Assembly: GCF_003918875.1 (NCBI RefSeq)
Contig: NW_025765136.1
Span: 124,001 to 188,000, forward strand
Source: Haliotis rubra
Taxonomy: Eukaryota
Direction: 5' to 3'
Length of the DNA stretch: 64,000 bases
Shown in pieces: positions 5,502 through 63,964 of this stretch; the first letter of the stretch is position 1; each line of letters starts with the position of its first letter. The notes beneath the pieces were generated by a model, which was not told where the DNA came from, searched no databases, and worked only from the letters and a program-made list of their open reading frames with translations. A program made the translations under genes and the position numbers.

Positions 5502-5601
5502 NNNNNNNNNNNNNNNNNNNNNNNNNNNNNNNNNNNNNNNNNNNNNNNNNNNNNNNNNNNNNNNNNNNNNNNNNNNNNNNNNNNNNNNNNNNNNNNNNNN
5601 N
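5502..5601. other. Assembly gap (100 N)
   Basis: Run of N. Confidence 1.
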
Positions 5602-28173: not shown

Positions 28174-28336
28174 NNNNNNNNNNNNNNNNNNNNNNNNNNN
28201 NNNNNNNNNNNNNNNNNNNNNNNNNNNNNNNNNNNNNNNNNNNNNNNNNNNNNNNNNNNNNNNNNNNNNNNNNNNNNNNNNNNNNNNNNNNNNNNNNNNN
28301 NNNNNNNNNNNNNNNNNNNNNNNNNNNNNNNNNNNN
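28174..28336. other. Assembly gap (163 N)
   Basis: Run of N. Confidence 1.
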
Positions 28337-40555: not shown

Positions 40556-40690
40556 NNNNNNNNNNNNNNNNNNNNNNNNNNNNNNNNNNNNNNNNNNNNN
40601 NNNNNNNNNNNNNNNNNNNNNNNNNNNNNNNNNNNNNNNNNNNNNNNNNNNNNNNNNNNNNNNNNNNNNNNNNNNNNNNNNNNNNNNNNN
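40556..40690. other. Assembly gap (135 N)
   Basis: Run of N. Confidence 1.
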
Positions 40691-42239
40691 NAATATTTTC
40701 CAAATAAGTGCAGCATTCAAAAGGGACTCATAAAATGAGTTAGAAAATACGACAAAGAGCAGTAAAATGGTGCTCTGTCAGGATCAGGTCCTTCAGCTTT
40801 TGAACTATGTGGGTTCTACCTGTCACTTCGGTGCCAAGGTATTCCAAAAGGTGTTTAATTGGGATCAAATCTCGTTTTGTCATTGTTAAATCACGTCGTA
40901 CTCAAGTTAATGTTCATGTGGATCAACATATTTTCACTTCACATCAGCTGAATAAAATAAGCTTCTCTTTCAAGATGATTTTGTAACATGCTTTATACAT
41001 TTAGAAAATACGCCTCTCTTTCAAGATAATGTTTTAACATGCCTTATTCATTTATTATAAGTGATTATCATAGCATCATATGTTTATTGTTCAAAAATGT
41101 TTATCCATATGGTTTGAGATACATGGAAAGGAAAAGTTTGTACGATTGTAATGTGATTTACAGCGTCGTCGACGTACCAGAGATAGCATTGTTGTCATGT
41201 TTAGCGACTTCACGTAGAGACAAGAGTCCATGTTAATGAAGTTCGATAGCAAAGGGCCTGAATGTGCTTTGAATCCCTGCTTCTTCGTGATCAGTCGGTA
41301 TAATTATAATTCATGGATAATAAAGGTAGTGTCGATAATAAAGACTTGTGGATGTAGTATGTTTGTGTGTTATCTATTATCATTGGTCGTTTTAAAATAG
41401 ACACAGCAAAGAGGATTCAGTGATGCTTGTAAAGTCTGGTTAAGCTCATCGCCAGCCTTCCTTTATTTACACGCAGCCCAGAGAGCGAATAGCACTTCTC
41501 CCATGAAGCACTGCCCAGTCGGACCCGCTGAGACGTTTTCGGTGCACAGGTAGAATTCCAAACACTGGAACTCAAAGTGTCAGAATGAGTGACTTTATTC
41601 AGCAATATTCCAGCTATATGACGGCGATCTGTAAATAAATCGGACCAGACAATCCAGTGATCAACAGCATGAGCATCGATCTACACAACTGGGATACGAT
41701 GACATGTGTCAACCAAGTCATTGAGCCTGACCACCCGATCCCGTTAGTCGCCTCTTACGACAAGCATGGGCTACTGAAGATCAATCCTAACCCGGTCCAA
41801 AGTGTCAGAAGGGCTGTGGTGCTGGCAGCAAAGGTGTGTACTCTCGTAATGTCAGTCAAAAGATTAGGGTAGCAAGAATAGTTGTGGGGTCGGACAACTT
41901 GGTACTCGGGCTTCAAGCGTGAAATTTTGCTAGCGGGATCGGTATATGTGCCATGTTTTTCCAAATTCTTGTCGGTTATAATTGAGTCAAAAGCACAGAA
42001 ACTTCAATGATACACATACTTTTGCTGGTTAACAAGACCCCCACAAAAAAATAATAAAACAAAATAAAAAAATAAAAAATAAAAAAATAAATAATTTAAA
42101 AAAATAAATAATAATAACAAAAAAGAAAAAAGAATTAAATCAAAAAAATCAAAAAAATCAATTAGGTTAATTAAGTCAACTTCATCATTCTCATCCATTG
42201 TGATTAGAGCTGACTGTTATAGCTTTTCTTCAAGAAGTG

Positions 42240-42941: not shown

Positions 42942-45083
42942 GTGGTTGTTGTGGAAGCACTTGTTATGCAGACAACATGCAAGTATTATACTATGGACTA
43001 GTGGCTGCAGTATGTTTCCATGAGCCAGTCTTGTTGGTGAAAATACCAAATAACAATGTGCGGCCTAGCCAGTTGTACTATTTCTACCTCGACGATTTGA
43101 GTTGTTGCTCTCGATATCAACCGCTGGTTTGACTAGCCTCGATGTTACATATAACTATTTAAAGGGCGTCGTGGATATTTCAAAATACAGTGAGTGCTGC
43201 TGCTAAGCCTCCTCCCCCAAATCCCCCTCCTGATAATCCTGCTCCTCCTAATCCCCCTCCTGATAATCCTGCTCCTCCTAACCATCCTCCTTCTAATCCC
43301 CCTCCTGATAATCCTGCCCCTCCTAACTATCCCCTCCTGATAATCCTGCTCCTCCTAACCATCCTCCTTCTCCTCCTGATAATCCCCTCCTAACTATCCC
43401 TGATAATCCTGCTCCTCCTAACCATCCTTCTGCTAATCCCCTCCTGATAATCATGCTCCTCCTAACTATCCTCCTCCTAATCCCTCTCCTGATAATCCTG
43501 CTCCTCCTAACCATCCTCCTTCTAATCCCCTCCTGATAATCCTGCTCCTCCTAACCATCCTTCTAATCCCCTCCTGATAATCCTGCTCCTCCTAACCATC
43601 CTTCTAATCCCCTCCTGATAATCCTGCTCCTCCTAACCATCCTTCTATCCCCCTCCTGATAATCCTGCTCCTCCTAACTATCCTCCTCCTAATCCCCCTC
43701 CTGATAATCCTGCTCCTCCTAACCATCCTTCTGCTAATCCCCTTCCTGATAATCCTGCTCCTCCTAACCATCCTCCTTTTTATCCCCCTCCTGATAATCC
43801 TGCTCCTCCTAACCATCCTCCTCCTAATCCCCCTCTTGATAATCCTGCTCCTCCTAACCATCCTCCTTCTTATCCCCCTCCTGATAATCCTCCTCCTCCT
43901 AACAATCCTCCTCCTAATCCCCTCCTGATAATCCTGCGCCTCCCAATACCATCCCCCTCCTAATCCCCCGCCTGATAATCCTGCTCCTCCTAACCATCCC
44001 CTCCTGATAATCCAGCTCCTCCTAACCATCCTCCTCCTAATCCCCTCTTGATAATCCTGCTCCACCTAACCATCTTTCTATTCCCCCTCCTGTTAATCCT
44101 GCTTCTCCTAACCATCCCCATCCTCATAATCCTGCCCCTCCTAACATCCTCCTTCTAATCCCCCTCCTGATAATCCTGCTCCTCCTAACCATCTTTCTAA
44201 TCCCCCTCCTGATAATCCTGCTCCACCTAACTATCTTCCTAATCCCCCCTGATAATCCTGCTCCTCCTAACCATCCTCCTCCTCATCCCCCTCCCGATAA
44301 TCCTGCTCCTCCTAACCATACTCCTACTAATCCCCCTTTTGATAATCCTGCTCCACCTAACCATCCTCCTTCTAATCCCCTCCTGATAATCCTGCTCCTC
44401 CCAACCATCTTTCTAATCCCCTCCTGATAATCCTGCTCCCTCCTAACCATCTTTCTAATCCCCTCCTGATAATCCTGCTCCACCTAACTATCTTCCCTAA
44501 TCCCCCTGATAATCCTGCTCCCACCCAACCATCCTCCTCCTCATCCTGATAATCCTGCTCCTCCTAACCATCCTCCTTCTAATCCCCCTCTTGATAATCC
44601 TGCTCCACCTAACCATCCTCCTTCTAATCCCCCTCCTGATAATCCTGCTCCTCCTAACCATCTTTCTAATCCCCCTCCTGATAATCCTGCTCCACCTAAC
44701 CATCCTCCTCCTAATCCCCCTCCTGATAATCCTGCTCCTCCTAACCATCCTCCTCCTAATCCCTCCTGATAATCCTGCTCCACCTAACCATCCTCCTCCT
44801 ATCCCTCCTGATAATCCTGCTCCTCCTAACAATCCTTCTCCTAATCCCCCCTCCTGTTAATCCTGCTCCTCCTAACCATCCTCCTCCTAATCCCTCCTGA
44901 TAATCCTGCTCCACCTAACCATCCCTCCTAATCCCTCCTGATAATCCTGCTCCTCCTAACATCCTCATTTTCATCCCCCTCCTGATAATCTTGCTCCACC
45001 TAACCATCTTTCTAATCCCCCTCCTGATAATCCTGCTCCACCTAACCATCTTCCTCCTCAGTAGGCGCCGTCCCCTAACTAAC
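42942..45083 (+). pseudogene. Third, deleted copy of the CYYR1-like gene: 3' part of the Cys exon, part of intron 2, then an expanded Pro-rich terminal exon
   Basis: 42942-42978 matches exon 2 (GCCGSTCYADN; donor GTAAGT changed to GCAAGT). ~43050-43180 matches intron sequence ~37260-37390. The array ends in 'ggcgccgtcccctaactaa', like the end of exon 4 ('ggcgccttcccctaactaa'). The TM exon is absent. Confidence 0.7.
43195..45060 (+). repeat. ~45-bp tandem repeat encoding PPDNPAPPNHPPSNP-like units
   Basis: Unit cctcctgataatcctgctcctcctaaccatcctccttctaatccc, about 40 copies with length variants. Confidence 0.95.
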
Positions 45084-45535: not shown

Positions 45536-48353
45536 ACCAAGCACGAAAAATCGATCATTGGCACTGAGTCAATAACATCTATCGGCCTACTTTACGAGCA
45601 GCAAATCATTAAAAAAAAGTGCGGAAAATTGTAAACGACAGTTCCCACATTCTGTTTTACGATTTTGAATTTCTTCCATCAGGTCGTCGTCTGCGCATGC
45701 CGATAGCTAGAACAAACATGTTCCCTTACTCTTTTGTACCAGCCGGTATTCATTATTTTAACAATAGTTAATCCTCAATATTTATATTCACCTTATTATC
45801 TTACCATTTCATACCATTTCACACCACTGCCTTATTTTACCTCATCATTTCAGTTCATCATATCCTACTTCTCCCCCGTTTTAGTGCTCTTAACTATTTA
45901 TTTGTTTACCATCTCAGTGCTTACTGAAATGTGATGTGTTGCGATTCCATGTTTTGTTCTGTCTCATGTGTTTTACGATGTAACCACAATTTCCTTCGGG
46001 ATAATAAAGTATTATCTTATCTTAACAAAATATAATAAATGGCGCTTTTTGACGTTTAGTTATAAAATGAGGGACTGCCTTGACAAGTATCCATATGAAA
46101 GATCGCATGTGTACCGAAAGTGTATATGTATATGTACCTAGGCTCTAAACAGTGACGTCGTTATGAATAACACATGCAATGAACAACACGCGGTGAAGTG
46201 GAGCTATAGATAGTCACCTTCACGGCAGCGGATGGAGGAAGAGTGATGTTTCCGTATGTTTCATCATCACTGTTGACGGGTCTAATACAAGGTATTGAAA
46301 TAATTATCTACTACTGACAACTCAAATGCTTAATAGCAGTTTACAGCTTGAAGCTGAACGAGGCGGTGATCGCAGTACTTGGATCGCACATCTCCCTATG
46401 TTTTCTTGACTCGGGGTCGTTTTCATCGTGGGTACTACAGATTTGTATCCCAGGCACATTTCTGGGCCTACCTTTAGAGCACAGCACCACAAACTGAAAA
46501 AATACGTCATAATACCCTTTTACGTATTTTTATGTGATTTTGTTCCAATGCACGTTTGCAGCGCACGCGTTCTCCAAACAATGCCCTATGACGGCGGCAT
46601 AGCAACACTGTCGAGCTAGTGCGTATAAGCTCCGCTCACTGATGTTTCATCTCTACTAGCTATGGCATTTCATAAGCCCAACTATGTTAAGAGTTTCCAG
46701 TAGTTGTTTACCGGCGGATGCGCAACTTTTCGCAAGCACCAGTTTCAAATATGTTTCTTTTATCACTGATACGCTCATATTTATTTGTATTAAGAGCTGC
46801 TGATGTGTTATATATTGTGTATTTTTGTATTTTGTATTTTTTAAAATTAAGTAAAAACCGGTCACATTCTGCCATATTCTATTATTTGCAGTTTGGGTCA
46901 ATTTCATTATTTAAATATATTTTAAGGTTTCAGTGTAACTATTAGGACTAAATGAAATATAAATATGTGAACTGATATATTTTTACATTCAGTAATTTAA
47001 TGCATCATTACACAGAAATGGAGTTTATTAGTATTTTATTTTTTGAAGCAGTAAATGCACAGTAGGCGCCGATCTGATATATTTATAAGTATGACCTATA
47101 TCTTATATCTTATACATATAGGTCATACTTATAAATATATCAGAGTCGGGCGCCTATGAGAATGCATTACACTGGAAATGTCAGTCATTTTCGTGACGGT
47201 TCGGTCAATGTATTCTACTAATTAGGATTATTTCAAGGGGTTAGGGTTAGGGTAAGGGACCTAATCCATTGTACATGTGAGGTGAGGTGAGGTGAAATTG
47301 GGTTTAACGTCGTGCTTGAGAGTATGTCGCTCATATGACGACGTGCATGCGTGTGTATGTGTATGTGCGGCTGCTTGTACTAGCCCAGACTTAAGCTGGT
47401 TTTATAGTGCTAGCCAACTGAGATACCATGCCGCAGTGAAGCATGAATACCCCACTCAGACACATCATACTGACTCTGTGCCGACCAGTTCTTGTTCCCA
47501 TTAATGCCGAGTGCCAGGCAGGGACCAACACTATTGTCTTTTGGTATGACGTAGTCAGGGATCGAACATGTGACCTACCGCTCTCCGGGCGGTGGTCTAA
47601 CCACTACACCAGGGAGGTGGTCCTAGTGACATGTGACCTTTGGCAGAGAACGTCCTCACGTGAAGTTGTGATGCTGATTTCTAAAGGTGCTCCAGATCTT
47701 TTACTGTGGGTTCTGGGATGCAGTTTAAATGGAGAGGTCAGGGGTCATTGGTCGTGAGACTGTATCATATTTTTTGCAATTATTCTTGCCTGTAAAAATT
47801 CCCATCATCATGATCAGGACCTAAATACTGCCGTCTATCCTCATGATCATCATAATCCCACTGACGCTGAATTACTCTATTAGGGATTGTTTTCATCGGG
47901 GGTACTAACAGATTTGTATCCCGGGCACATTTCTGTATCCAGAGATTTGCCATAGCCAAAATCATTATACAGAACAGTATCCATGCAGTACCGTAAATAG
48001 CAATATATGAGTACCACAAAAACAAAGCTGGTTCATGTTTTTCAGATTCATCTGATAACCATGCTAGATAATGCTCTGAATATAAGTGAACGAGTTGCAT
48101 GCTGTTTTTAGCCATATTCCAGCAATATCATGGCGGGGAACACTAGAAATGGGCTTCAAACATTGTACTTATGTGTGGAATCAAACCCAGTTCTTCAGAG
48201 TGACGAGTGAACACTTAAACCGCTACCCCACCACCGAAGACTAATATAGGAGCTAGGAATATAGGAGTACTGTTTGTGATATTGTCACTTTGTATCTTCG
48301 TGTTTTAAATAATTTGCTAAATGATTAGTGTTAAGATCCTGTCAGTGACAACA

Positions 48354-49032
48354 TATATACCATTAAAAAAATTAGGGGATATTCCATTTTGCTAGCATAC
48401 CACTAGCCAATGCCAATGCATATGAGAAAAAGTAATATATATCCATACAGATGAAGCATTTCCAAAGGAATGGAATAAATTGTCACATTTTCCTTAATTT
48501 CTCTTCATCATCTGTTTCCTCCTTGGCTTCATCATTTGCATTTTATCAATCTTGTAAATCCAGTTTCCCCTACTTTTTTGAATGGTATATAACGTTACTG
48601 TAGAAGGCTGTGGGATAACATTTGGTTTTATGTAGCCTGGAGCATTATGCAGCGGCGGCATAGCAAGACAGCGGGCGCGCTAAAGTGAGATTATTGCTCT
48701 GCGACAGGCAGGCAACGCTGCCTGGGGCTGTGCTCGGTGAATTGCACGTTTTTAGAGGTAAACAGACACACAGACAGACAGACAGACAGATATTTTGTTA
48801 AAGTATCACCTCGTATATTTACATGTGTACATGGAATGGCTGTTGACAGCCTGGAGGATTATAAAGAAAATATACCATTCAAAAGTAGGGGATATTCCAT
48901 TTCCAAAGGAATGGAATAAATTGTCACATTTTCCTTAATTTCTCTTCATCATCTGTTTCCTCCTTGGCTTCATCATTTGCATTTTATCAGTCTTGTAAAT
49001 CCAATATCCCCTACTTTTTTTGAATGGTATAT
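48354..49032. mobile_element. Two adjacent copies of a small TIR element (~48354-48590 and ~48870-49032)
   Basis: Each copy is bounded by atataccatt.aaaa..taggggatatt and its reverse complement; they share a ~130-bp near-identical segment. Confidence 0.6.
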
Positions 49033-49109
49033 CTTGATGTGAGATTTGTCATTACAGACCCCACTATACCTAACTATCTTATTGTTTGCACAATGCAGTT
49101 TACCAAGTA

Positions 49110-49608
49110 CAGTGAAACACTGTCTAAACCGGCACCCCATAGGACCAAAATAAAATGCCAGTTTAGGCAGCGGTGCCGGATTAGACAGTGACGATAATTT
49201 TCGAACATGGCTGCCAATTACACTCTGTAATCTCTTTATTTCTGATTATCTAGCCTGCCAGGAGGAGTGTATTGGATTAAGGGACCTTGATTGGACTGCT
49301 CATACCCATGCCGGCTTTGAGCGTTTGATTCACTGCGTAATCACTACTTCGATTTCCTGATTGTCTTGCGTGACAAGAGGATTAATTAGTGTATTGGATT
49401 ATGAGTCCTTGATTGGACTGCTCATACCCATTCCGGTTTAGACAGTGTTAATTACAGTTCAAATTGCTTGTTGTGACCGGAAAGTCGTGCCGGAATACGG
49501 AATGTTTTAATGATCATAATATCGTTGTAAAATGGCGGGACCAAAATCTTATGCCGGTTTTGACAGTGTGCCGGATTAGACAGGTGCCGGTGTTGGCAGG
49601 TTTTACTG
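49110..49608. mobile_element. pogo/Tigger-type MITE ending 35 bp upstream of the LARS ATG
   Basis: TA|cagtgaaacactgtctaaaccggcacc ... ggtgccggtgttggcaggttttactg|TA, with internal 'ccgg.ttagacagtg' subterminal repeats. Confidence 0.8.
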
Positions 49609-49642
49609 TATAATCAAAGCAGTGAACCTATTTCAACTCAAC

Positions 49643-52600
49643 ATGGAGAGAAAAAGTACCGCCAAATTGTCGGAACTACAGCAGATAGAGAAAGGAGTGC
49701 AAGCAAGATGGGAAAAGTTGAAAATCTTTGAAGAAGATGCTCCTCCAAGTGGGTCAGCAGAGGCAAAGTGAGTTTAAAGCTGGGTCTTAAAATATATTTT
49801 AACAACCTGTAGTGCTTTTACAAGAACTGAGGATATAAGGGTGTATATAAGGGTGTTTGTCATCATGGGTGACACGTAAGAAATGGTCAGGCTCGTAGAC
49901 TTGGTTGATGCCAGTCAACATATCCCATTTGCACAGAATGATGCTGATATTTCTCATGATGTCATTCGCTGGAATGTCTGGCATTTCAAGAGATCACGAA
50001 TAATGAAATAGTTTCTTGAAGGAATAGGGTTTAATTCACTGTAGGGCTGGGACGGGTCCAAATTTTCTACCTGGGTACCCCACCCCTATTACCCTACCCT
50101 ACCCGGATACCCATTATTGTAAATTCCTGACATCAAATTTGGAAGAAATGGCATATATTCTTCAGCTCAGAGGCTAAAATTCTGACTTTTTCAATATCTT
50201 AATCATGTATTATATTCAAAACAGGTGACTGTAAATTATGTCTAAATCTTCAAAGACAATACAACTTTTAAATCATGAAAGAATAACATATTACATTGTT
50301 TAATCTATTAGTCACATGATCATAACGAGTCCGGGTATTGAGACGGGTACCTGGGTCCAACTCATTACCCACCCGTCTCGGGTATCTGTGTTTCCCATCC
50401 CAGTCCTAATTCACTGAATATACAAGTAAATCAAAACAGCCCTGCAATTGAGTGGGGCTTTTGCACAACAATCATACAACATTGATGAAACAAACAATAC
50501 AATCTGATAATGTTTTGTTTATATAGACTAACATAGCATGTATAATAAATCTGTTTCAGACAAGAGAAGTACTTGGCGACATTCCCCTTTCCATACATGA
50601 ATGGCCGTCTTCACCTTGGCCACACGTTCTCGCTGTCCAAATGTGAGGTGGGATATATATCTGGTCATACTTTAAACCCTTCTTTATATTAGCATGTAGA
50701 GCTTACAATAGCTGTATGAATTAGTGCCTGTTTAGAATCGTACTTCTTTTAAGTGGTGCCTAAACAATAGCGATTTGAATCTATGATAATTGTTAAACAA
50801 CTTTTATCCAAAGTTGAATAAAATTCTGAGATTTAGATGTTCAACTGGCAAGATAAAATTATGACAATTCGCAATCTTAATTACACTTTATTCGATTTAC
50901 TTTTTTGTTTAAAGTGAAATTCATTGGTACGTTTTCACTACAAACAGACTATACATATAGAATTGAAAAGTTTCACCTTCAATATTTTTTTAATGCATGA
51001 TATTTGTGACACCACTTGCATGTTTCAGTTTGCTGTGGGGTACCAGAGGATGCTTGGGAAGAAGTGCCTGTTTCCATTTGGTTTCCACTGTACTGGCGTG
51101 CCAATCAAGGTGAGTAGCAAAGAAGAAGGAACATCGAATCTGTTGCCACTAAAGTGTTTCAGGGGTGGAAATAACCCATTGCCCGACGTCCGAGTCCAGT
51201 GTCTTTTTCTGTCGGGCAAGCAAATTTGTATATCACACTGTACCGGTGTCCAGTTGACTTTCCAATGTTTATTATGTTGTTTATTTAAAAAATCAGCAAG
51301 AAAACGGTTGGTAAAGTGGGAAAATTATCAGGGCAAGTGACTTTACATGTGCCACTGTACCTGGAGTACACTAGCAATTTTAAAGTTATTTCCACCCCTG
51401 TGTTTACAGATATGTTAGTAATAGAATCTTCAAGGGGCCAGTGTTATATGATATACCTGTCGTAAGAAGTACTTCGTCAGAAACTAACATTATAAATTTG
51501 GACTTGTATTGATAGAGGTCTGGTTTAGTAAGGTTCTGTTTTGGGGAGATGTCACTATACATGATTTGTGAGGTGATAGCAGGTGCCCATGTTTACCAGG
51601 CATGTGCAGATAAGCTGAAGCGGGAGATGGAAGACTATGGATTCCCCTCCTCCAGGTTTCCCCTCGAGACCACGGAGGAGGAGGTGGCGCCCACAGAAAA
51701 GGATGTCGTGATCAAGGACCAGGCTGTGGGCGAGAAGGTGAGGCTACTCTTGTAATATTTTACAGTATAAATTTTTCTGCAAGCTGATTGGCTGGGGTTG
51801 GACACGTTGAAAATAGTTTATCTGAGTGTTAGGCTATTGTATGAAGTAATTTGTGTTGATTAGTGAAAGTAAACATGAGCACGAGTTGTAATCTCCCCAA
51901 GGAGTTGAGATTGAAAATACGATGTGCTGTTGAGATTGACATCCAGTGATCGAGGGAACAGACAAAGCCCTTTGAGCATGCATGTAGATGGGATGGACTA
52001 TAGTGCTATATAAATACCCATATAATAATAATAATAATAATAATAAATGCTAAAAATGTCTTCATGCAGAATGTTTACCAGTTTGTAAGTACAGACTGTT
52101 GTGTTAAAGTTAAGTAACCTACACTTAAGTATCTCAGAGGTTTGACACAAGGGCAAAATGATGAACAGATAACGAGCTCCCAGTTTGTTTTCTTTCAACA
52201 CGTTCAAGATAACTGTAAGTTTGACTGTAGCATATTTGTGTTTGTATATCTGAGAGGGCTCTGATCTGATGATTATTTTTAGACCGCCGCTGCTGAGTGC
52301 GGCGTAAAACTAAACTCACTCACTCACTCTGATAATATCGTACATGATCATGTGTTCCTTTCAGAGTGAAGTGTTGGCGGAAACTGGTGGTCTTGAATAT
52401 CAGTGGCAGATCATGGCTGCCCTAGGACTGACCAATGATGAGATCAAATCCTTTGCTGACCCTGTACACTGGCTGAAGTACTTCTCCTCTCACTGCAAGA
52501 GTGACCTCATCAGATTGGGAGTCAGGGTAGGTGATTACTGGTGGGGGTGACAGTGTGTTGGGTTGGGAGTCAAGGAAGGTGATTACTGGATGGGGTGACA

Positions 52601-55600
52601 GTATGTTGGGGTGGGAATCAGGGTAGGTGATTACTGGTGGGGGTGACAGTGTGTTGGGATGGGAGTCAGGGTAGGTGATTACTGCTGGGGGTGAGAGTAT
52701 GTTGAGGTGGGAGTCAGGGTAGATGATTACTGTTGGGGTTGACAGTGTGTTGGGGTGGGATTAGGGGTAGGTGAATACTGCTGGGGGTGACAGTATGTTG
52801 AGGTGGGAGTCAGGGTAGATGATTACTGTTGGGGTTGACAGTGTTTTGGGGTAGGGGTAGGTGAATACTGCTGGGGGTGACAGTATGTTGGGGTGGGAGT
52901 CAGGGTAGATGATTACTGTTGGGGTTGACAGTGTGTTTGGGTGGGAGTCAGGGTAGATGATTACTGCTGGGGGTGACAGTGTGTTGAGGTGGAAGTCAGG
53001 GTTAAAGGTCACATGCAACATAAAACACAACTTTGCAGATTCTGATACCTTTCGGTATGGACTAACGACACAAAGTGTCAAAAATGCAAATTCAACTTAC
53101 AAAGTTGAAAAATAACGCAATGAAAAAAACCGCGCGAAAACGTTTCACTAATTTTCCCCAGACTTTTCTGGGGAATACGGGTTTCAACAGCTGGGCTGCG
53201 CTCATAGCACGTGCGCAGTGAAATAGGTTCGCGCAACTTGGAAGCGGGCTGTCTGGTGAATACCGGTGAAGGCTTTGGTGTGAGCTATTTTCATAATGTT
53301 TTGTTGATATCTCACAGGCACGAGCTTTTTGTATGTTATGACAGTAAATAAACTGTTTATATAATTTCATTTGTCTATTTCACCACACATTCTTCTTACC
53401 GAGTCACTTTCTCAGTTCGATACTTAAAAGCAATGTCATTATTTAGAGTTGACACAATTTCTAACTGTGATATAGATATGTCGCTGTCACAGACAAAACT
53501 CAATGTCTTGTTTTATTGACACCTGTGTGTCTGCCTGACTGTCTGCTAATGACAATATTCAATACACAACTGCGATCACTGACCACATGCAATTTGAACT
53601 TAACACCAATCAGGCTATACACCATAAACAAAACGCATTGATTTATGGCCCGAGTTCGGTCTCTGTCACATTATGTAATTACACAGACAGGCAGGTGTGA
53701 TACTTGAACACATGACATGTTATGATATCTGTTGATTGCAAAATGTTATACACAAGAAATGAGCATGTATTTACAAAACCCAACTTTCTATGTATACACA
53801 CACAATGAGCCGTGAAGGCGGCATCTGCTAATGAACCAGCCGTTACACTTGAGTGCACACCCACCCGCTCTGACTGGGTTCGGTATCCCGGCTGCTTCGT
53901 TTCGAGGGAGGTAAACCCAAGTACAAAATATTGCACTTTTGATTTGCGATTATACGCTTATAATTTTGTTTATTTGTTTTTTCATAATCAGCAATGCATA
54001 TTATATGTCATGAAGAAGTGATAATTGTGTTTTATTTATGTTTGATTTTTTGGTTGCATGTGACCTTTAATGATTTCTGTTGGGGTGACAGTGTGTTGGG
54101 GTGGGAGTAGGGGTAGGTGAATACTGCTGGGGTTGACAGTATGTTGGGGTGGGAGTCAGGGTAGATGATTACTGCTGGGGGTGACAGTGTTTTGGGATGG
54201 GAATCAAGGTAGATGATTACTCCAGGGGGTGACAGTGTCTTAGGATGGGAATCAAGGCAGATGATTAATGCTGGGGGTGACAGTATGTTGGGGTGGGAGT
54301 CGGGGTAGGTGATTACTGCTGGGGTTGACAGTGTCTTAGGATGGGAATCAAGGCAGATGATTACTGCTGGGGGTGACAGTATGTTGGGGTGGGAGTCAGG
54401 GTAGGTGATTGCTGCTGGGGGTGACAGTATGTTGAGGTGGGAGTCAGGGTAGGTGATTACTGCTGGGGGTGACAGTGTGTTAGGATGGGAATCAGGGTAG
54501 GTGATTACTGTTGGGGGTGACAGTATGTTGGGGTGGGAGTCAGGGTAGGTGATTACCGCTGGGGGTGACAGTGTGTTAGGATGGGAGTCAGGGTAGGTGA
54601 TTACTGCTGGGGGTGACAGTATGTTGGGGTGGGAGTCAGGGTAGATGATTACTGCTGGGGGTGACAGTATGTTGGGATGGGAGTCAGGGTAGGTGATTAC
54701 TGCTGGGGTGACAGTATGTTGGGATGGGAGTCAAGGTAGATGATTACTGCTGGGGGGGATGACAGTATGTTGGGGTGGGAGTCAGGGTAGGTGATTACTG
54801 CTGGGGGTGACAGTGTGTTGGGATGGGAGTCAGGGTAGATGATTACTGCTGGGGGTGACAGTATGTTGGGGTGGGAGTCAGGGTAGGTGATTACTGCTGG
54901 GGGTGACAGTGTGTTAGGGATAGGGAACTGCTGGGGGGTCAGGGTAGGTGATTACTGCTGGGAGTGACAGTATGTTGGGGTGGGAGTCAGGGTAGATGAT
55001 TACTGTTGGGGGTGACAGTATGTTGGGATGGGAGTCAGGGTAGGTGATTACTGCTGGGGGTGACAGTGTGTTAGGATGGGAGTCAAGGTAGATGATTACT
55101 GTTGGGGTGACAGTATGTTGGGGTGGGAGTCATGGTAGGTGATTACTGCTGGGGGTGACAGTGTGTTGGGGTGGGAGTCAGGGTAGATGATTTCTGCTGG
55201 GGGTGACAGTGTGTTGGTGTGTTGTGGGAGTCAGGGTAGATGATTACTGCTGGGGGTGACAGTGTGTTGGGGTGGAAGTCAGGGTTAATGATTTCTGTTG
55301 GGGTGACAGTGTGTTGGGGTGGGAGTAGGGGTAGATGAATACTGCTGGGGGTGACAGTATGTTGGGGTGGGAGTCAGGGTAGGTGATTACTGCTGGGGGT
55401 GACAGTATGTTGAGGTGGGAGTGATGGTAGGTGATTACTGGTGGGGGTGACAGTGTGTTGAGGTGGGAGTAGGGGTATTTGATTACTGCTGAGGGTGGCA
55501 GTGTGTTGAGGTGGGAGTAGGGGTATTTGATTACTGCTGGAGGTGGCAGTGTGTTAGGATGGGAATCTTTAACTGAGAGTGTTATCTCAAATCTTGCTTC

Positions 55601-58600
55601 AACCTGGATTATGTTTCTTCATTTATCTTATACCATATGTATGCTCATGAGATAGATATCTCAAATCTTGCTTCAGACTTTATGTTTCTTCATTTGTCTC
55701 TTACAGTATGTGATGCTCTGAAATTCTGCAAAGAGGCATAGAGGCCAAATGAGTTACTCCCTCACTTACAAACTCTCTGATTGGCTGCTGCAGGTTGACT
55801 GGAGGAGGAGCTTCATGACTACTGATTACAACCAGTACTTTGATTCCTTCGTCCGCTGGATGTGTATCAGGCTGAAGGAACGGGGCAAGTGCAAGTTTGG
55901 GAAAAGGTGGGAGATGTGATTGGACTGTGAATACAAATGGAGGGTGGTGGGGTAGCCTAGTGGTTGAGGCCTCGCTCATCGCAACGAAGACCCGGGTTCG
56001 ATTCCCCAAGTTGGAACAATGTGTGAAGCCCATTTCTGGTGTCCAATTCTCAAGATATTGCTGGAATATTGCTAAAAGCGGCATAAAACTAAACTCGGTC
56101 ACATTCATAAGGACACAGGATTTTGGAATCCTTCATTTTGCTATATATATATACAAAAAATGAGCTTGTCAGTTGGGGCGCTAAACTGGTATCAGATAGG
56201 ATGTTATTGTATGTTACACCAATGCTTGTACGGGTTATAAACAAAAATTTAGATCCAGGCCAGGAGTGATCTTTAGCAGCGTATGTTTTCGTAAGCGGTG
56301 ACTTACGAGATCGGGTAGGGAAGCCTAATACTGATTAGGTTAGTGTTGCGGCCTTGGATTTACCCTCTATGTCAATGAGAATAAAGGCTGCGGGTGTGAG
56401 GTCACTCGTTTATTTTGAGGATTTAGTGGATAGCAGTAGATATCAGTTGATATCAGTAGACGCTCCTGTGGGTGACACGGAAGTGTTGCTACCGGCGGTC
56501 AACCCTCCGCAAACTACAGGATTGTAATACCTTAGAAGTAGCTTATCATGTACTATGTTGATTTGCTGTCACATCAAGTGATCACATGTGCTGAGCTCAT
56601 AAGGTGACGGTGACAAGTGCTGTGTAAGTGAAAAATGGCTGATGACCTATGATTTGAAACAAGCCAATCCCAATGAACCAGGTGATCATTACAAATCACA
56701 TCACTGACAGTAAGATAGAATAACCTAATTGCCCTATGACCTTGTAATGGAATGATCCAAAACAATCAGAGACCTGCATTAAGCACTTAAAATACTACTT
56801 GCCGACAACTGCTTATTGTGAACACACTGAACCTCTGTTGAACCCAAAACAACACAGATGTATATACATTTTGATAAAAGATACGCAACACATGAAGTTA
56901 ATATAAATGCTTTTATTTCACCCTATGCATGTCATCGTATGCTTGAAATGTCCATCACTGGATTGTCAGGTCCAGACTCAATAATTTACAGACCATGATC
57001 AGAGCTGGATTATTGTTGAGTGTTGCATTAACAATTAATTGTAATGCGTATGAAAGGCTTTTCTTAGACTGAATAATGTCCTTTATACATGTGTACAGAC
57101 GTTGATGTTCTAAATGTACGTCAGGTACGTTTTGTTACAGGTACACCATCTTCTCCCCTAAAGACAACCAGCCCTGTATGGATCATGACCGTAGTTCAGG
57201 GGAGGTAAGTGGGGCTTATAATCCAGTACCACATTCCAGCTTAGAGGTGAGGTGAGGTGAAATTGGGTTTAACGTCGTGCTTGAGAATATTTCTCTCATA
57301 TGACGACGTGCATGCGTGTGTATGTGTATGTGCGGCTGCTTGTACTAGCCCAGACTTAAGCTGGTTTTATAGTGCTAGCCCACTGAGATACCATGCCGCA
57401 GTGAAGCATGAATACCCCAACAAGTACCATAATTTAACGTCTTTTGGTATGACGTGGTCAGGGATTGAACCCGCGACCTTCCGCTCTCTGGGTGGATGCT
57501 CTAACCACTACACCACGGAGGCGGTCCTCCAGCTTACAGATGACTTAGCATGTCATCACCTCCAAATGCTGACTTGCTTATCATTTGTTAACAAAAGCCT
57601 ATATTCTGATACTCGTGATGATCCGGGTTAGAATTGGATGGGTGGTCAGGCTTGGTTGACACATGTCATTGTATTCTAATTGTATAGATTGATGCTCATG
57701 CAGTTGATCAGTGTCTTGTCCAGACTCGATAATTACATTCTGTCGTTATATAGCTGGAATACTGCTGTGTGTGACGTGAGACAACAAACCAACCAAGCCA
57801 TATTCTGAAATCAGATGAGTCTGACCTAATGCAAGGTTTTCGGTGCACTCTTCATATTGTTTTGCGCAGTATATATATATGTTACTACAACTTGGGCTGA
57901 CTATCGATATTGATCATAGAGACAGATAATCATTAACTAAATATTGATCGATTGTCGATAAATATCAGAGACATAACTTTGAACAAAAATGTCTGACAAA
58001 TGAATATACTTCACATCATTGGCAAGTGGTGACATGTTTTTGTATAGATTATAAACAAAACAGAATACTGAACATAATTTAGAAGCAGACCATAAATAAA
58101 GTCCTAAACCTTTTTCTATCACAAAAGTTCATGTACGATATTATCGATAACACAATTTTCATGTCAATAATCATTTATAATCTTTACTATTGACGATATT
58201 TTCAATTATTGATAATTTTAGCCAGCCCTAACTGTAACAGTGAGTGAATAGTAACAGCCCTAATGGTGATTATTATTTTTTATTTTATTCATAAGATCAC
58301 TGCAATATTTCAGGGTGTGGCACCTCAAGAGTACACACTGATTAAGATGAAACTCACTGAACCTCTGCCTCAGAAACTCAGGTGAGTGTTTTGTTACCAT
58401 GGTTACAAAATTTCAGTGTAAGTTTTGTTATGTTATTCAAGCTCTCATTGTTATCAGTGTGTGAAATATTCTCAAAATATTGATGGACAGGTGGGCAAAC
58501 TGAACTTAAAACTTTCTGGTCATCTTCCAATTTCATTATCTTAATTTATGTGTAACAGTTATTTTTTTCCGAAATTCATTTATGGGAAGGTTTGATAGAT

Positions 58601-61600
58601 TATATTTCTTATATTTTTGGTAGTTGCATTGATCTTTAGAAATGGGAGAATCTTTTCTGTTCTGATCAAATGAGTGCATAAAAAATAACATGAAATCTCA
58701 GTATCAACTCTGGCTTGTCAGGGCTCCAGCTAATTATTTTGACTCAGTCATATTTACAAATATAATGAAATTATTTATTGACTGGTCAAGTATTATCGGG
58801 ATGAGTTTTAAAACTGACATATTCATGTGAGCACTGTTTGGGGACTGGTCTTTTATTATAGGGTGGCTGTCCTGAAAAATGGTTACATGGGAGATGATGA
58901 AAGTCATGAAAACATACTACAGAAAATGGTGTTGGGGTGTTAGCTAAGTATGATACAGCACTAAGACCAATGACATCGCACACACAGCTCACCACAAAGC
59001 CCGCACACACACTCACCACCCACACTCACACACAATGCCCACGCCCCATGCCAACATGCACACCCACCCCACACCACTGCACGACACCCACACACCTTAA
59101 TAAATGACCAGTTCCTTGACTTTACTATTCAAGTCATTTGGTGTGAAGGGAAAAATAGCCATGAAAAGAGTTGGCAAGGAGGTAACTTTGACCTCCCAAA
59201 TGATCATGCCCTTTGGGTTTGTCATATTCATTTTATTTCAGCCAATATATATGCTTCGTTTCTTTCATTCCACAGTTCTCTGACGGGTCGTCCGGTGTTC
59301 CTGGTTCCTGCAACTCTGCGCCCAGAGACCATGTTTGGACAGACAAACTGTTGGTTGCATCCGGACATGAAGTATGTGGCCATAGAGATTGTGACTGGAG
59401 AGGTGTTTGTGTGCACACGCAGAGCAGCACGGAACATGAGCTACCAGGGATTCACAGCGGTCAATGGAGAGTACAAGGTCCTGGTGGAACTCGTGGGACA
59501 GGTACGGCATGTTGATACAGGTAGAGACAGGTAGATAGGTTGCCGGACTCAGAGACTTGGTTCATGTCTGCATACTCTTGGGGGGGTGGGGTAGTCTAGA
59601 GGTTAAAGCACTGGCTCGTCACGCCATGTGTGAAGCCCTTTTCTGGTGTCCCCCGCCATGATATTGCTGAAATATTGCTAAAAGCATTGTAAAACCACAC
59701 TCACTCAAGGATAGTAACTGTAAATATGAATCATTTGATTGTCTGGTCCAAGCACAAATATAAATACAGGTCATCATGATGTAGCTCAGGGTTCGCACGG
59801 GCTTGAAAACGCCTGAAATTTGGACATTTAACCCCGAAAGGCCATACATTTATTTTAGCTTTCAAAAGGCCCTAAATGCCAGTGATTTGCCCTAAAATGG
59901 TCCCATATTTAGCAAAACTTGTCAAGTTAGGATTTTACAGAAAACTAATACATAATAAATTGTAGCTTGCAATGACAATGGGCGTTAATTAATCTCCATT
60001 GCCCCTTTATACTTTCGGCCAGATTTTCAAATTTAAAGTGTTGATTAGGCCTTGAAAACAGCCTAAAAACTTGTTAAATTTGATGGCTGACAATCTGTCA
60101 AACCCTGTTGCTGGAATACAGCTGAGAGACACATCATCGACAGGTAGTCAAATGTATTGTCCACTGAGCTACCTGGTGTGATCCTTCATCTGCCAGAACC
60201 CATCTGTACTAGAGTGAGTGAGTGAGTATTGTTTTACACCGCTTTTAGCAACACTCCAGCAATATCATGACGGGGGACACCAGAAATGGGCTTCACACCT
60301 TGTACCCATTTGGGGAATCGAACCCAGGTCTTCGGCGCGACGAGCGAACACTTTACTCACCAGGCTACCCAACCGCCCCCAATTTGTACCAGAGCCTTTT
60401 ACCTAAGTGATTACTGTCTACATCCTGGGTCACTCTGTGGACACCCCAGTTGTGTAAACTCCAACAGAAGGATAACTGCAACACAAAAAGTAATATTCAG
60501 ACCATATTGTGCACGCTTTATTTGGTGAGTGCACAGGCGCGTAGCAAGCCATTTTTTTGTGTGTAAGCCCGATAGAGCAAGGTAAAGCAGTATTTCTGGT
60601 GCCATTTCTATCAGCATAATTTCTGGTTAATTTTCAGGACGTGATGGGTCATGCCCTGTCAGCGCCTCTGTCAGCGTACAAGACAATCTACACCCTGCCA
60701 ATGCTGACCATCAAAGATGATAAAGGTAGGAAGATACTGTCAATGAAGTGGCCCTCCACTATTGTTCATACACAACGAATTTCAACTCATACAGTCAGTA
60801 CATGGCCAATTTCATACATTTTAACTTACAATGCAACACAGCTGTATTAATATATACACAGTACTACACAGAGCTACACAGTACTACACACAGCTACACA
60901 GTACTACACAGCTACACAGTACTACACAGCTACACAGTACTACACAGAGCTACACAGCACAACACAGTACTACAGAGCTACACAGTACTACACAGAGCTA
61001 CACAGTGCTACACAGTACTACACAGAGCTACACAGAGCTACACAGTACTACACAGAGCTACACAGTACTACACAGAGCTACACAGTACTACATTTCTGAG
61101 GGTGTCCCCACAGTACTACACAGAGCTGCTACACACTACAGTAATCACAGAGCTACAAAGTACTACACAGTACTACACAGAGCTCTTAGTACTACACAGA
61201 GCTACATTGCTACACAGTACTACACAGAGCTACTCAGTACTACACAGTACTACACATTGCTACACAGTACTACACAGAGCTCTTAGTACTACACAGTACT
61301 ACACATTGCTACACATTGTACTACACAGTACTACGCACATTGCTGAACAGTACTACACACTACACAGTGCTACACAGTACTACACATACACAGTGCTACA
61401 CACACAAAGTGCTACACACACTAAGTACTACACAGAGCTACACAGTACTACACATTGCTGAACAGTACTACACAGAGCTCACAGTACTACACAGTACTAC
61501 ACATTTGCTACACAGTACTACACACACAGTGCTACACAGTACTACAGTACTACACATTGCTGCACAGCTACTACAGTGCTACACATTGCTACACAGTACT

Positions 61601-63964
61601 ACATTGCTACACACACAGTGCTACTATGGTACTACACATTGCTACAAAGTGCTACACAAAGCTCTACAAATTGCTACACAGAGCTACACATTGCTACACA
61701 GTACTACACATTGCTGAACAGTACTACACATTGCTCAACAGTACTACAGTACTACACACAGTACTACACAGTACTACATTGCTACACAGTACTACACACA
61801 GAGCTGCAAAGTGCTACACAGTCCTAAAAGTATTACACATACAGAGCTCACAGTACTACACATTGCTGCACAGTACTAAACAGAGCCTATAGTACTACAC
61901 AGTACTACACATTACTACACAGTCCTATAGTACTACACAGAGCTGCAAAGTGCTACACAGTCCTAAAGTATTACACAGAGCTGCAAAGTGCTACACAGTC
62001 CTAAAGTATTACACAGAGCTACAAAGTGGTACACAGAGCTACAAAATACTACAGAGAGCTACAAAGTGCTACACAGAGCTACAAATATGCTATAGAGCTA
62101 CAAGGTACTACACACAGCTACAAAGTGCTACACAGAGCTACAAATATGCTTTAGAGCTACAAGGTACTACACAGAGCTACAAAGTGCTACACAGAGCTAC
62201 AAATATGCTATAGAGCTACAAGGTACTACACACAGCTACAAAGTGCTACACAGAGCTACAAAATACTACATAGTGCCTTAGTGTCTCTACTTTTACAGAC
62301 AGGGAAGAAGTTCTATCACTGTGTTGAACTGTGTAACATCAGATTAGTATAACAATTACATTTATCCTAAAATCCTTGTTTTTGTTCAAATTGTCCACTT
62401 ATTTCAGTATGAGCCTATAAGCTGATGTTTTATGATACTCAGTTATCGTGTGTATGTGATTCAGGGACAGGTATTGTGGCTAGTGTTCCCTCAGATTCGC
62501 CTGATGACATCGCAGCTCTCCGAGATCTCAAGAAGAAAGAAGTTAGTATACTTTTTAATTACAAAAAATATATTGCGTTTTTAAACTTATCCTATCTCAC
62601 GGTATGCACTTCTCTCTCTTCCTTCGACCATGGCGTGGAAACGTGCTGTAGGCTAAGTTGAATCAAATCTTCTGGACTCTCTCCCAACTGTTCGCTGCCC
62701 CCGGTACCACCCACTCCACTTGTGCTGTGTAAGCCAAGGGGTTTATAAATCAGAAGCAACTTATCACAAGTATTGGAGTTTAGCAAATTGGGAGTTAGTG
62801 CTTTCTCCTGGCCTCCTTGTGTGTAGGGACCACCCACTCCTAGAGTTTTTGTGCTGTGTAAGCCAAGGGGTTAAAATCAGAAGCAATCCTATCACAAGTA
62901 TTGCGACCTCACGGTTGTAGAGTTGACACAGGGTAATCTGCGGCCCACCAGCCAACCGTGGGATAATGCATACCATGAGATAGGATAAGTTTAAAAAATT
63001 GGAAATTTTAACTATAATTTGTATATTTATATACTTATCCTATGGATGCCCACCCAACCTTCCCCACATCACAGATTACTGGGGGCTCCAAGTCGAAAAT
63101 GACCATCTGAGCGCAAAGCACGTTTCACAGAGATGATTGACAGGTCCAGTGGGGGGAGCCATCGGGTGGGAGAGAGGCCAGAAGATTTGATTCAGCTTAG
63201 CCTACAGAACGTTTCCACACCGTGGTCGAAGTAAGAGAGAGAAGTGCATACCATGAGGTAGAATAAGTATATAAATATACAATTTATAGTTAAAATCTGC
63301 AAAATGTGAGCCAGGAGTGATACCAAATTGAGAATTTTTGAAAACACAGCAAGTCTATCTGTGAACTGAACCCTGTCAGCACAGATGAAACGCTGGTTTG
63401 CCTGGTTAAACATTTGTATATTTACACAATGTTGTGATATGCCTCACAGTGCAGTGTAAGTTATGAACACTCTGAAAATACTTCTTTCGTCATTCGATGT
63501 TTGATACAGGAAAAGTATCAGGATTAGGTGTCTGACTTTGTGTGCTGGCGATTAGGTCCCTGACTCTGAGGGTGTGTTTGTTCAAATCCTTGATGGGACT
63601 CAACCCTCCAAAAAGAACTAGAATTTGTACTTTACTAAGAAAGTGTAATCCCAAATGTTACATGAAAAGTGGCCAGTGATCACTATGCTGAGCTTTGTTG
63701 CTACCTGTAAGTATTAATTTCAGATTAAATATTATGGCTGGTATGCTTCATATGCAAATTATTAGAATGGGTCCTAGCCAGTTAGATTCGAAAATCTGCA
63801 GGAGTTACGATAACTTTGTGACAAGTGTGACAAATTCATGATTAGAGATTGATGTTTGTGTTAATGTCTTTACTGTGTTTGCTGTGATTATTATGTTTAC
63901 TTTGTTCCAGCCTTTCAGGCAAAAGTATGGCATCAAGGATCACATGGTGTTGCCCTTTGAACCC
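49643..63964 (+). CDS. LARS1: Leucyl-tRNA synthetase, cytoplasmic type (N-terminal 428 codons; gene continues beyond the window); sequence-divergent copy
   Basis: Manual splicing with GT-AG sites and matching phases. Exons: 49643-49767, 50560-50647, 51029-51109, 51600-51737, 52365-52526, 55794-55906, 57141-57204, 58314-58381, 59276-59501, 60638-60725, 62465-62541, 63911-63964 (1284 nt, no stops). Translation MERKSTAK...[14 protein letters not shown] (HIGH motif)...[17 protein letters not shown]...VDWRRSF...[12 protein letters not shown]...[15 protein letters not shown]...[15 protein letters not shown] (CP1 editing domain)...[13 protein letters not shown] is colinear with human LARS1 as recalled. 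Confidence 0.96.
50042..50408. mobile_element. hAT-type MITE with a perfect 8-bp TSD
   Basis: attcactg|tagggctgggacggg ... cccatcccagtccta|attcactg. Confidence 0.85.
51160..51400. mobile_element. hAT-like MITE
   Basis: 16-bp TIR caggggtggaaataac / gttatttccacccctg; no clean 8-bp TSD. Confidence 0.6.
52513..55568 (+). repeat. 48-bp G-rich minisatellite (~41 units) in LARS intron 5, split by the Kolobok-like MITE
   Basis: Unit gggagtcagggtaggtgattactgctgggggtgacagtatgttggggt; the first unit overlaps the exon 5 end and donor. Confidence 0.95.
53006..54066. mobile_element. Non-autonomous Kolobok-like DNA transposon with TTAA target-site duplication
   Basis: TTAA|aggtcacatgcaac ... gttgcatgtgacct|TTAA. 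An empty-site unit of the same minisatellite (gtcagggTTAAtgatttctg) lies at 55278-55297. Confidence 0.85.
57892..58230. mobile_element. hAT-like MITE
   Basis: Ends ttgggctg / cagcccta with a degenerate 8-bp TSD actacaac / actgtaac. Confidence 0.55.
59787..60107. mobile_element. hAT-like MITE
   Basis: Ends cagggtt / aaccctg, with subterminal 'cttgaaaa..gcct' motifs near both ends. Confidence 0.5.
60212..60380 (-). mobile_element. tRNA-derived SINE family 1, full-length copy in a LARS intron
   Basis: Reverse complement of the 1786-1960 consensus. Confidence 0.85.
60855..62270 (+). repeat. ~10-bp satellite (tacacagtac / tacacagagc variants) in LARS intron 10
   Basis: Visible tandem array of ~1.4 kb, with variant units drifting to tacaaagtgc toward the 3' end. 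Confidence 0.95.
62578..63296. mobile_element. Non-autonomous DIRS-like (tyrosine-recombinase retrotransposon) mini-element
   Basis: ~100-bp inverted terminal repeats (62585-62687 versus 63165-63268), plus an internal region 62967-63043 complementary to both the left terminus and the right terminal extension. Confidence 0.65.

Follow-up and report, generated by a model that had tools for sequence, protein, structure and literature searches.

To our knowledge, gene duplicates of cytoplasmic aminoacyl-tRNA synthetases are rare in animals. The gene described here is such a duplicate of LARS1, which encodes the cytoplasmic leucyl-tRNA synthetase (LeuRS), in the abalone Haliotis rubra; its first exons lie on the plus strand of a 64 000-nt stretch of contig NW_025765136.1 (positions 124 001–188 000; hereafter the window, with position 1 as its first letter). 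Among vertebrates, TARSL2 has been described as the only cytoplasmic synthetase duplicate (PMC10200997). The window copy resembles TARSL2/ThrRS-L (PMC10200997, PMC9437257) in being an animal cytoplasmic synthetase duplicate with its catalytic apparatus kept, and probably in low expression, TARSL2 being thought not to serve bulk translation; however, TARSL2 is old, vertebrate-wide and carries an N-terminal extension, whereas the window copy is young, belongs to one abalone lineage and has gained no new domain. A second LeuRS is also found in archaea, as LeuRS-I of Sulfolobaceae and LeuRS2 of Halobacteria (PMC9437257, PMC4005665), where charging has been lost or much reduced while substrate binding is kept; these duplicates show that a LeuRS copy can move away from a role in translation. 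They are ancient and have a disrupted CP1 or a foreign tRNA-binding domain, in contrast with the window copy, whose CP1 and motifs are intact.

The residues of the window copy were compared with those of human LARS1 (6LPF/6LR6, 6KQY; PMC7229842), with which it shares the ten-part architecture, nearly the same numbering and about 60% identity. In the human enzyme, Y54, H251, L594 and S597 bind leucine, and T293, T298 and D399 are the editing and benzoxaborole-binding residues; the Lys/Glu stretch of LSD1 is conserved in all eukaryotic LeuRS, lies about 6 Å from the KMSKS loop and has no known function (PMC7229842). In our literature search, neither LARS1 of abalone nor its duplication was the subject of any paper found.

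Relocation and age of the duplicate

The H. rubra assembly (1.38 Gb, 2855 contigs) was searched with the exon 9 protein and the exon 15 DNA; each of these whole-genome searches matched only the contig of the window (C246) and contig C2835, and no third copy was found by either. The copy on C2835 corresponds to RefSeq XP_046556271, and RefSeq annotates two genes. The two loci are colinear from about 2–3.6 kb before the ATG to about 100 bp beyond the stop, with exons 88–93% identical, introns 72–87% identical and a protein identity of 92.7%; the splice sites are conserved, and 29 of the 30 exons are equally long in both copies if a one-codon difference in exon 4 is set aside. Outside these limits, the contigs match only through dispersed repeats. 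In H. asinina and H. rufescens, LARS1 occurs as a single locus, immediately preceded by a CS-domain gene. Colinearity of these loci with C2835 extends into the flanks on both sides, whereas with C246 it starts only at about 1.8 kb ahead of the ATG and stops at the end of the gene. Since the flanks of the relatives follow C2835 and not C246, the C2835 locus is the ancestral one, and the comparison identifies the window gene as a relocated DNA-level duplicate that retained its introns. The likely promoter region was copied with the gene as a 5′ flank (46024–49642, plus strand), with which the copied segment approximately begins and which contains two blocks colinear by blastn with the upstream regions of C2835 and H. 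asinina (46024–46386 and 47695–48311).

A maximum-likelihood tree built from 18 sequences placed the window protein within the LARS1 clade, as sister to the other H. rubra copy (support 83/74), with H. asinina next, in a fully (100%) supported abalone clade inside the gastropods with a stem of 0.27. Among the protein clusters examined, H. asinina, H. rufescens and H. cracherodii had one LARS1 each. Taking H. asinina as the outgroup, 22 derived codon changes are common to both copies, of which 18 are synonymous and 4 non-synonymous, and the pairwise synonymous divergence (dS) is 0.177 between them, compared with 0.28–0.33 to H. asinina. These values place the duplication after the split from H. 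asinina. Exons 14 and 28 with their near flanks differ by only 0 and 1 bases between the copies (L003:2677–2754, L007:4036–4131) against a gene-wide dS of 0.18, which points to local gene conversion between the paralogues, so the dating is soft.

Both copies were also detected in DNA runs. Only 13 of the 132 31-letter words of exon 5 are common to the two copies, and exons 3, 6, 7, 8, 11, 12, 16, 19, 20 and 24 have no such word in common. When 13 words of exon 5 were sampled, 31–61% of them were present in four DNA runs; the contigs of an independent DNA run, labelled as a second species, carried nine of ten window-type exon 16 letters beside the parental type. The duplicate is thus not peculiar to the assembled individual, and the window copy is not an assembly slip. 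At one position of the parental exon 16 (L010:4573), one RNA run and one DNA run had the window-copy letter T at full depth on an otherwise parental-type contig, reflecting either a polymorphism or a small conversion tract.

Structure and coding capacity of the window gene

Exons were defined by tblastn seeds and splice-site scoring over about 40 codons on either side of each candidate intron. The window gene starts with an ATG at 49643 and consists of 30 exons, 3534 nt and 1177 codons. Its reading frame is uninterrupted by stops or frameshifts, all introns are GT-AG and each of the 58 splice sites is canonical. Exons 1–12 are inside the window, and the remaining 18 extend 47 kb beyond it on C246 (exons 13–30, C246 189199–235442, or 65199–111442 in continued window numbering, plus strand). 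Every one of the 30 exon peptides was matched exactly in RefSeq XP_046556656/7 (1177 aa), named 'leucine--tRNA ligase, cytoplasmic-like', with two transcript isoforms; the window gene had therefore already been annotated as a gene in RefSeq, and this public protein was used as the full-length sequence in the alignments and the tree. The Pfam domains tRNA-synt_1, Anticodon_1, RBD_LARS1 and ULD_3 were all above their cut-offs in XP_046556656/7, which is the full LARS1 domain set.

The HIGH signature is kept as HLGH (residues 60–63, exon 2), which was the same in 59–60 of 60 outgroups at each position. The KMSKS loop reads KMSKG, with both lysines (K716 and K719), the Met and the first Ser kept; the last Ser is Ser in 45 of 60 outgroups and Gln or Asn in 13, and Gly (S720G) is found only in the window copy. 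As in human LARS1, the leucine pocket retains Y54, H251, L594 and S597, the CP1 editing domain retains T293, T298 and D399 together with TLRPET and PDD, and the RagD-binding and ubiquitin-like domains are present. We found neither the disrupted CP1 or lost catalytic motifs of LeuRS-I-type non-aminoacylating paralogues nor, at the benzoxaborole and editing contacts, the changes of a resistance paralogue, although no search was aimed at a toxin or inhibitor source linked to the gene in the window; nor were the broken frame and lost splice sites of a pseudogene observed.

Compared with the parental copy and the LARS1 genes of H. asinina, H. rufescens and H. cracherodii, the window copy has the same 30 exons, identical in length except for exons 4 and 15, and differs in its new position without the ancestral neighbours, in a threefold longer branch and in an extra Ser codon in exon 4.

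Probable relaxation of constraint on the window copy

The branch of the window copy in the tree was about three times as long as that of the parent (0.056 versus 0.019), and 181 of 183 full-length outgroup proteins were closer to the parent. Polarisation with 25 non-nematode outgroups assigned 50 derived replacements to the window copy and 19 to the parent, including 12 versus 1 at strongly conserved columns. Branch codon counts, made by parsimony over 1093 codons with H. asinina as the outgroup, gave 63.5 synonymous and 45.5 non-synonymous changes for the window copy, a ratio of non-synonymous to synonymous rates (dN/dS) of 0.20, and 38 and 12 for the parent, a dN/dS of 0.09, against a background of 0.06–0.07. 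The difference between the two branches was significant (Fisher p=0.034), and the dN/dS of the window branch was far below 1 (p=4e-16). These results indicate that the window copy is under relaxed but real purifying constraint.

The relaxation is uneven along the protein. For the LSD1 exons 4 and 5, we counted 13 non-synonymous and 4 synonymous changes in the window copy (dN/dS 0.92) and 1 and 6 in the parent, whereas the Rossmann, editing, anticodon-binding and C-terminal parts gave a dN/dS of 0.12–0.25 (LSD1 versus the rest, Fisher p=0.007). This distribution indicates that LSD1 evolves neutrally, its constraint having been lost. Columns conserved in at least 95% of the 60 animals took 12 of 57 private replacements, compared with 26.8% for a process blind to conservation (p=0.37), while the other abalone lineages placed 0 of 15, 2 of 23, 1 of 90 and 3 of 215 replacements in such columns. 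Among the changes of the window copy at conserved columns are four of the five LSD1 lysine replacements and E592G, next to the leucine pocket.

Position of the private changes

The private residues of the window copy were located in human numbering, and 14 of 60 fall within residues 115–186. M95V lies in HCTGMPI. At the start of the LSD1 insertion there is the extra Ser with P115S, and within the disordered Lys/Glu stretch of LSD1, five conserved lysines in 17 residues are replaced as K139Q, K143E, K146E, K150E and K155E, none of them by Arg. T390A is nine residues ahead of the editing Asp399, and E592G and I599V are in ESLSDSTIY, the source of the pocket residues L594 and S597, which they flank. 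The other differences from human LARS1 in this private set are P185S, P186S, A706V (in RANGH), S720G and D833N. With H60–H63 and the binding, editing and KMSKS residues named above all kept, the product most likely still folds and can bind leucine and ATP. From the loss of about nine charge units beside the tRNA-gripping loop, we infer that tRNA handling is probably weakened.

Motif substitutions in the light of other animals

A sequence-only reading of the window had listed eight motif strings that differ from human LARS1, and it proposed that specificity or editing might be altered, or resistance to a LeuRS inhibitor gained, with a young relaxed duplicate as the alternative. All eight strings are present in the plus-strand frames of exons 2–11, and HLGH, TLRPET and PDD are kept as it described. 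We compared these columns with 60 non-abalone animal LARS1 proteins and four other abalone sequences. The description of the residues as normally invariant held for M95, P185, A291, T390, G260 and F222, but not for Y52, V388, V210, Q221, P212 and P186.

Exon 1 (49643–49767) matches the RefSeq protein exactly. Exon 2 (50560–50647), which also encodes HLGH, has FPFPY with Y52F, a change at a leucine pocket position, Phe being found in all abalone and in 11 of 60 outgroups, including four of nine other gastropods. Exon 3 (51029–51109) has HCTGVPI, where Met is found in 60 of 60 outgroups and Val solely in the window copy. The two halves of LSD1 are encoded by exon 4 (51600–51737), with the extra Ser codon, P115S, K139Q and K143E, and by exon 5 (52365–52526; branch dN/dS about 1.0), with K146E, K150E, K155E and YFSS; P185 and P186 are Pro in 60 and 50 of 60 outgroups, and Ser occurs at both solely in the window copy. 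Exon 6 (55794–55906) has the inherited DYNQY and RWMC. The V210Y column is variable (Val in 32 and Ala in 22 of 60), and Tyr also occurs in H. asinina and in the second H. rubra copy; P212Q (Pro in 54 of 60) is shared with the second copy, and the abalone states at Q221M and F222C (conserved in 51 and 56 of 60) are genus-wide. Y214F, also in exon 6, is private to the window copy between the two H. rubra copies, and Phe is also present in H. asinina and H. rufescens.

Exon 7 (57141–57204) has the MDHDR motif with His251. Exon 8 (58314–58381) has GVAPQEY; at G260A, Gly is present in 56 of 60 outgroups and Ala in all abalone. The CP1 editing domain starts in exon 9 (59276–59501), where T293 and T298 are kept and A291P, verified against solved human LARS1 chains, replaces an Ala found in 58 of 60; Pro is shared with the parental copy, H. 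asinina and about 8 of some 120 fragment representatives. Exon 10 (60638–60725) is followed by exon 11 (62465–62541; donor GTTAGT), with PDD including D399 and GTGIVASVP, in which V388I is shared with the parent and found in 14 of 60, and T390A, solely in the window copy, replaces a Thr found in 57 of 60. Exon 12 (63911–63964) is the last in the window. All these exons are on the plus strand.

FPFPY, RWMC and GVAPQEY are thus found in the sole LARS1 of each of H. asinina, H. rufescens and H. cracherodii, and the exon 9 motif and DYNQY in the second H. rubra copy. On this alignment, five of the eight motif changes are inherited and older than the window gene, and three (M95V, P185S/P186S and T390A) are private to it and in near-invariant columns. 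Since the five were already there when LARS1 was the sole cytoplasmic LeuRS, the proposed change in specificity, editing or inhibitor resistance is not supported in that form, and the residues known for leucine binding, editing and benzoxaborole binding are all retained (PMC7229842). The genus-wide oddities relative to human are due to the long abalone stem; comparison of an invertebrate enzyme with the human one alone exaggerates oddity because most of the odd residues are normal for abalone. The alternative of a young relaxed duplicate was borne out by the relocation, the branch length, the dN/dS and the near-blind placement of replacements, and the KMSKS, anticodon and C-terminal regions, which it had flagged for inspection, showed the motif and domains described above.

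Lesion in exon 15 of the parental copy

Exon 15 of the parental copy (C2835 296197–296330; L010:6197–6330) has lost its acceptor AG and has 14 extra bases in its 5′ part, where a 32-nt intron minisatellite, with a unit resembling the exon 15 acceptor region, abuts the exon. RefSeq XP_046556271 reads through the exon 14 donor, so that KEAVLYMEPE is replaced by V-SVKILHP. In both RNA runs, however, the depth over exon 15 corresponded to 24 + 36 aligned bases, and the RefSeq form, which predicts 38 instead of 36, was rejected on this misfit. By bin arithmetic, the contigs fit the normal exon 14 donor joined to an AAAG/AGG acceptor, giving a 56-nt exon 15 with an in-frame loss of ten codons. All other in-frame acceptors upstream of the in-frame stop were checked by hand, and none was canonical. 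The lost decapeptide lies where the CP1 editing domain meets the CP core (domain limits from PMC7229842) and includes Y505, E507 and E509, which are invariant in 58–60 of 60 animals; the window copy keeps KEAVLYMEPE intact. It is possible that each copy has lost something different.

Expression of the two copies

Expression was assessed in assemblies, in which contigs show presence and not absence and the tissues are unspecified. Two RNA-like and two DNA runs were compared with the parental exons 15–16 at 88% likeness, a level that window-type exon 16 (93% alike) would pass. Parental-type exon 16 was present in both RNA runs, and one of its contigs, 4954 nt in length, ended exactly at the exon edges, indicating that the parent is transcribed and spliced. 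The two RNA-like runs gave only parental-type exon 16 contigs and none of the window type, and three RNA-like runs contained 1 of the 13 sampled exon 5 words, approximately as expected from the words shared with the parental copy. Expression of the window copy would be low or restricted at most.

Origin and fate of the window copy

Taken together, we consider the window gene to be, with somewhat better than even confidence, a young, intact, relocated LARS1 duplicate under relaxed constraint. A DNA segment containing the whole gene, about 2–3.6 kb of upstream and about 0.1 kb of downstream sequence was copied from the ancestral C2835 locus to a new site. With the parental gene covering the essential job, the constraint on the new copy may have eased. 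Purifying selection still acts on most of the protein, with a dN/dS some two to four times that of the parent, while the disordered lysine-rich stretch of LSD1 by the KMSKS loop has lost its constraint and turned from basic to acidic. The data show the duplication, its direction, the open frame and the rates with their distribution; the remaining abilities of the protein and the reason for its retention are inferred. The young pair displays the first steps after a duplication, namely, uneven easing, a fully released LSD1 and an unexpected lesion in the parent, and if the window copy is expressed, its K-to-E variant is a ready natural mutant for the role of LSD1.

Several observations weigh against this interpretation. 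No window-type transcript was seen, and a recently silenced gene could likewise have replacements spread almost evenly over conserved and variable columns. Given the damage to the parental exon 15, the essential role of the parent is an assumption. The two copies are united at a node of moderate support, and local gene conversion may blur the dating.

Another explanation is that the copy is being reshaped for a different job, such as leucine sensing, regulation or a changed substrate, with the LSD1 reversal and the pocket and KMSKS changes being adaptive. The one-sided replacement of the five LSD1 lysines, the cluster of private residues in residues 115–186, and the location of E592G, I599V and S720G at the pocket and in the loop that LSD1 approaches (PMC7229842) are in line with this proposal, as is the constraint still acting elsewhere in the protein, the RagD-binding and ubiquitin-like domains at its C terminus among them. 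However, the dN/dS of LSD1, about 0.9, does not exceed 1, the replacements outside LSD1 are scattered with no focus on a single site, and LSD1 is without known function even in the human enzyme (PMC7229842). No expression of the window copy was seen in the RNA-like assemblies. We regard this explanation as unlikely, although the best placed of the rivals.

Rather less likely is a complementary degeneration of both copies, the parent in the editing-core decapeptide and the daughter in its basic LSD1 and near the KMSKS loop and pocket, or a daughter that serves as a leucine-binding protein with weakened tRNA binding and not in bulk charging. If true, this would be a natural experiment on the function of LSD1, a segment conserved in all eukaryotic LeuRS.

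The window copy could also be a recently dead gene, normally constrained during the greater part of its existence but since silenced and left to drift, its frame still open for want of time. The missing window-type transcript and the near-uniform rate at which private replacements strike conserved columns would be expected from such a gene, and the locus is untidy, with a large tandem duplication, an inverted exon fragment and introns of 62 kb versus 40–48 kb elsewhere. This model needs a dN/dS of 0.07 followed by 1, that is, about 14% of the branch neutral, for which several frame-breaking changes are expected on a rough estimate; nevertheless, the 1177 codons are open and every splice site is canonical. 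Moreover, the dN/dS of 0.12–0.25 in five separate domains shows no general upward drift, and RefSeq gives two transcript isoforms. The simple-pseudogene possibility raised by the sequence-only reading is not borne out: the downstream exons have no stop or frameshift and the dN/dS is far below 1. Expression was not seen in two transcriptome assemblies. We judged recent death to be less likely than a relaxed duplicate, and the chance that it is correct is small.

It is very improbable that the window copy, with its intact KEAVLYMEPE, is the main working LeuRS in place of a parent whose RNA contigs fit the loss of these ten residues; it is the parental transcript that was assembled as a spliced 4954-nt contig, the parental copy evolves slowly (dN/dS 0.09) with no other changes at conserved columns, and an essential housekeeping transcript should assemble, which the window type did not. 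Marine molluscs are highly heterozygous and the assembly consists of contigs, but an artefact, in the form of diverged haplotypes of one locus or a misassembly, is scarcely credible and the haplotig or allele explanation was rejected, given the unrelated flanks outside the gene, the synonymous divergence of 0.18, the presence of both forms in DNA contigs of one run and the two genes annotated by RefSeq.

Repeats and other features of the locus

Several introns of LARS1 have minisatellites whose unit is like the adjoining splice site, such as the 32-nt unit described for exon 15 and a 48-nt unit at the exon 5 donor. The latter, in intron 5 of the window gene, begins at the donor and occupies 52516–55564; the parental intron 5, of 288 nt, has no such array. 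A minisatellite with a 10/20-nt unit in intron 10 (60855–62276) is also present in the parental copy, and the intron 14 array, that of the 32-nt unit, is likewise found in both the window gene (L003:2861–4241) and C2835.

A tandem duplication of 3.58 kb, 99.75% identical, was detected within the window gene at 98040–105203 of the continued numbering (L006:4040 to L007:1203). The repeated segment comprises the last 102 nt of exon 23 with intron 23 and exon 24, and the frame stays open when a single exon 24 is included; the duplication either took place very recently or is an artefact of assembly. Intron 22 contains an inverted degenerate fragment of exon 7 on the minus strand (90829–90903 in continued numbering; L005:6829–6903), with an 85% blastn match to the exon 7 region of C2835. 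Runs of N at 5502–5601, 28174–28336 and 40556–40691 (399 bases in total) are all located outside the gene. Just upstream of the boundary of the duplicated segment, a C-rich minisatellite with a 15/45-nt unit, CTAATCCCCCTCCTC, in about 125 copies (43195–45058), accounts for the strong negative GC skew in this region.

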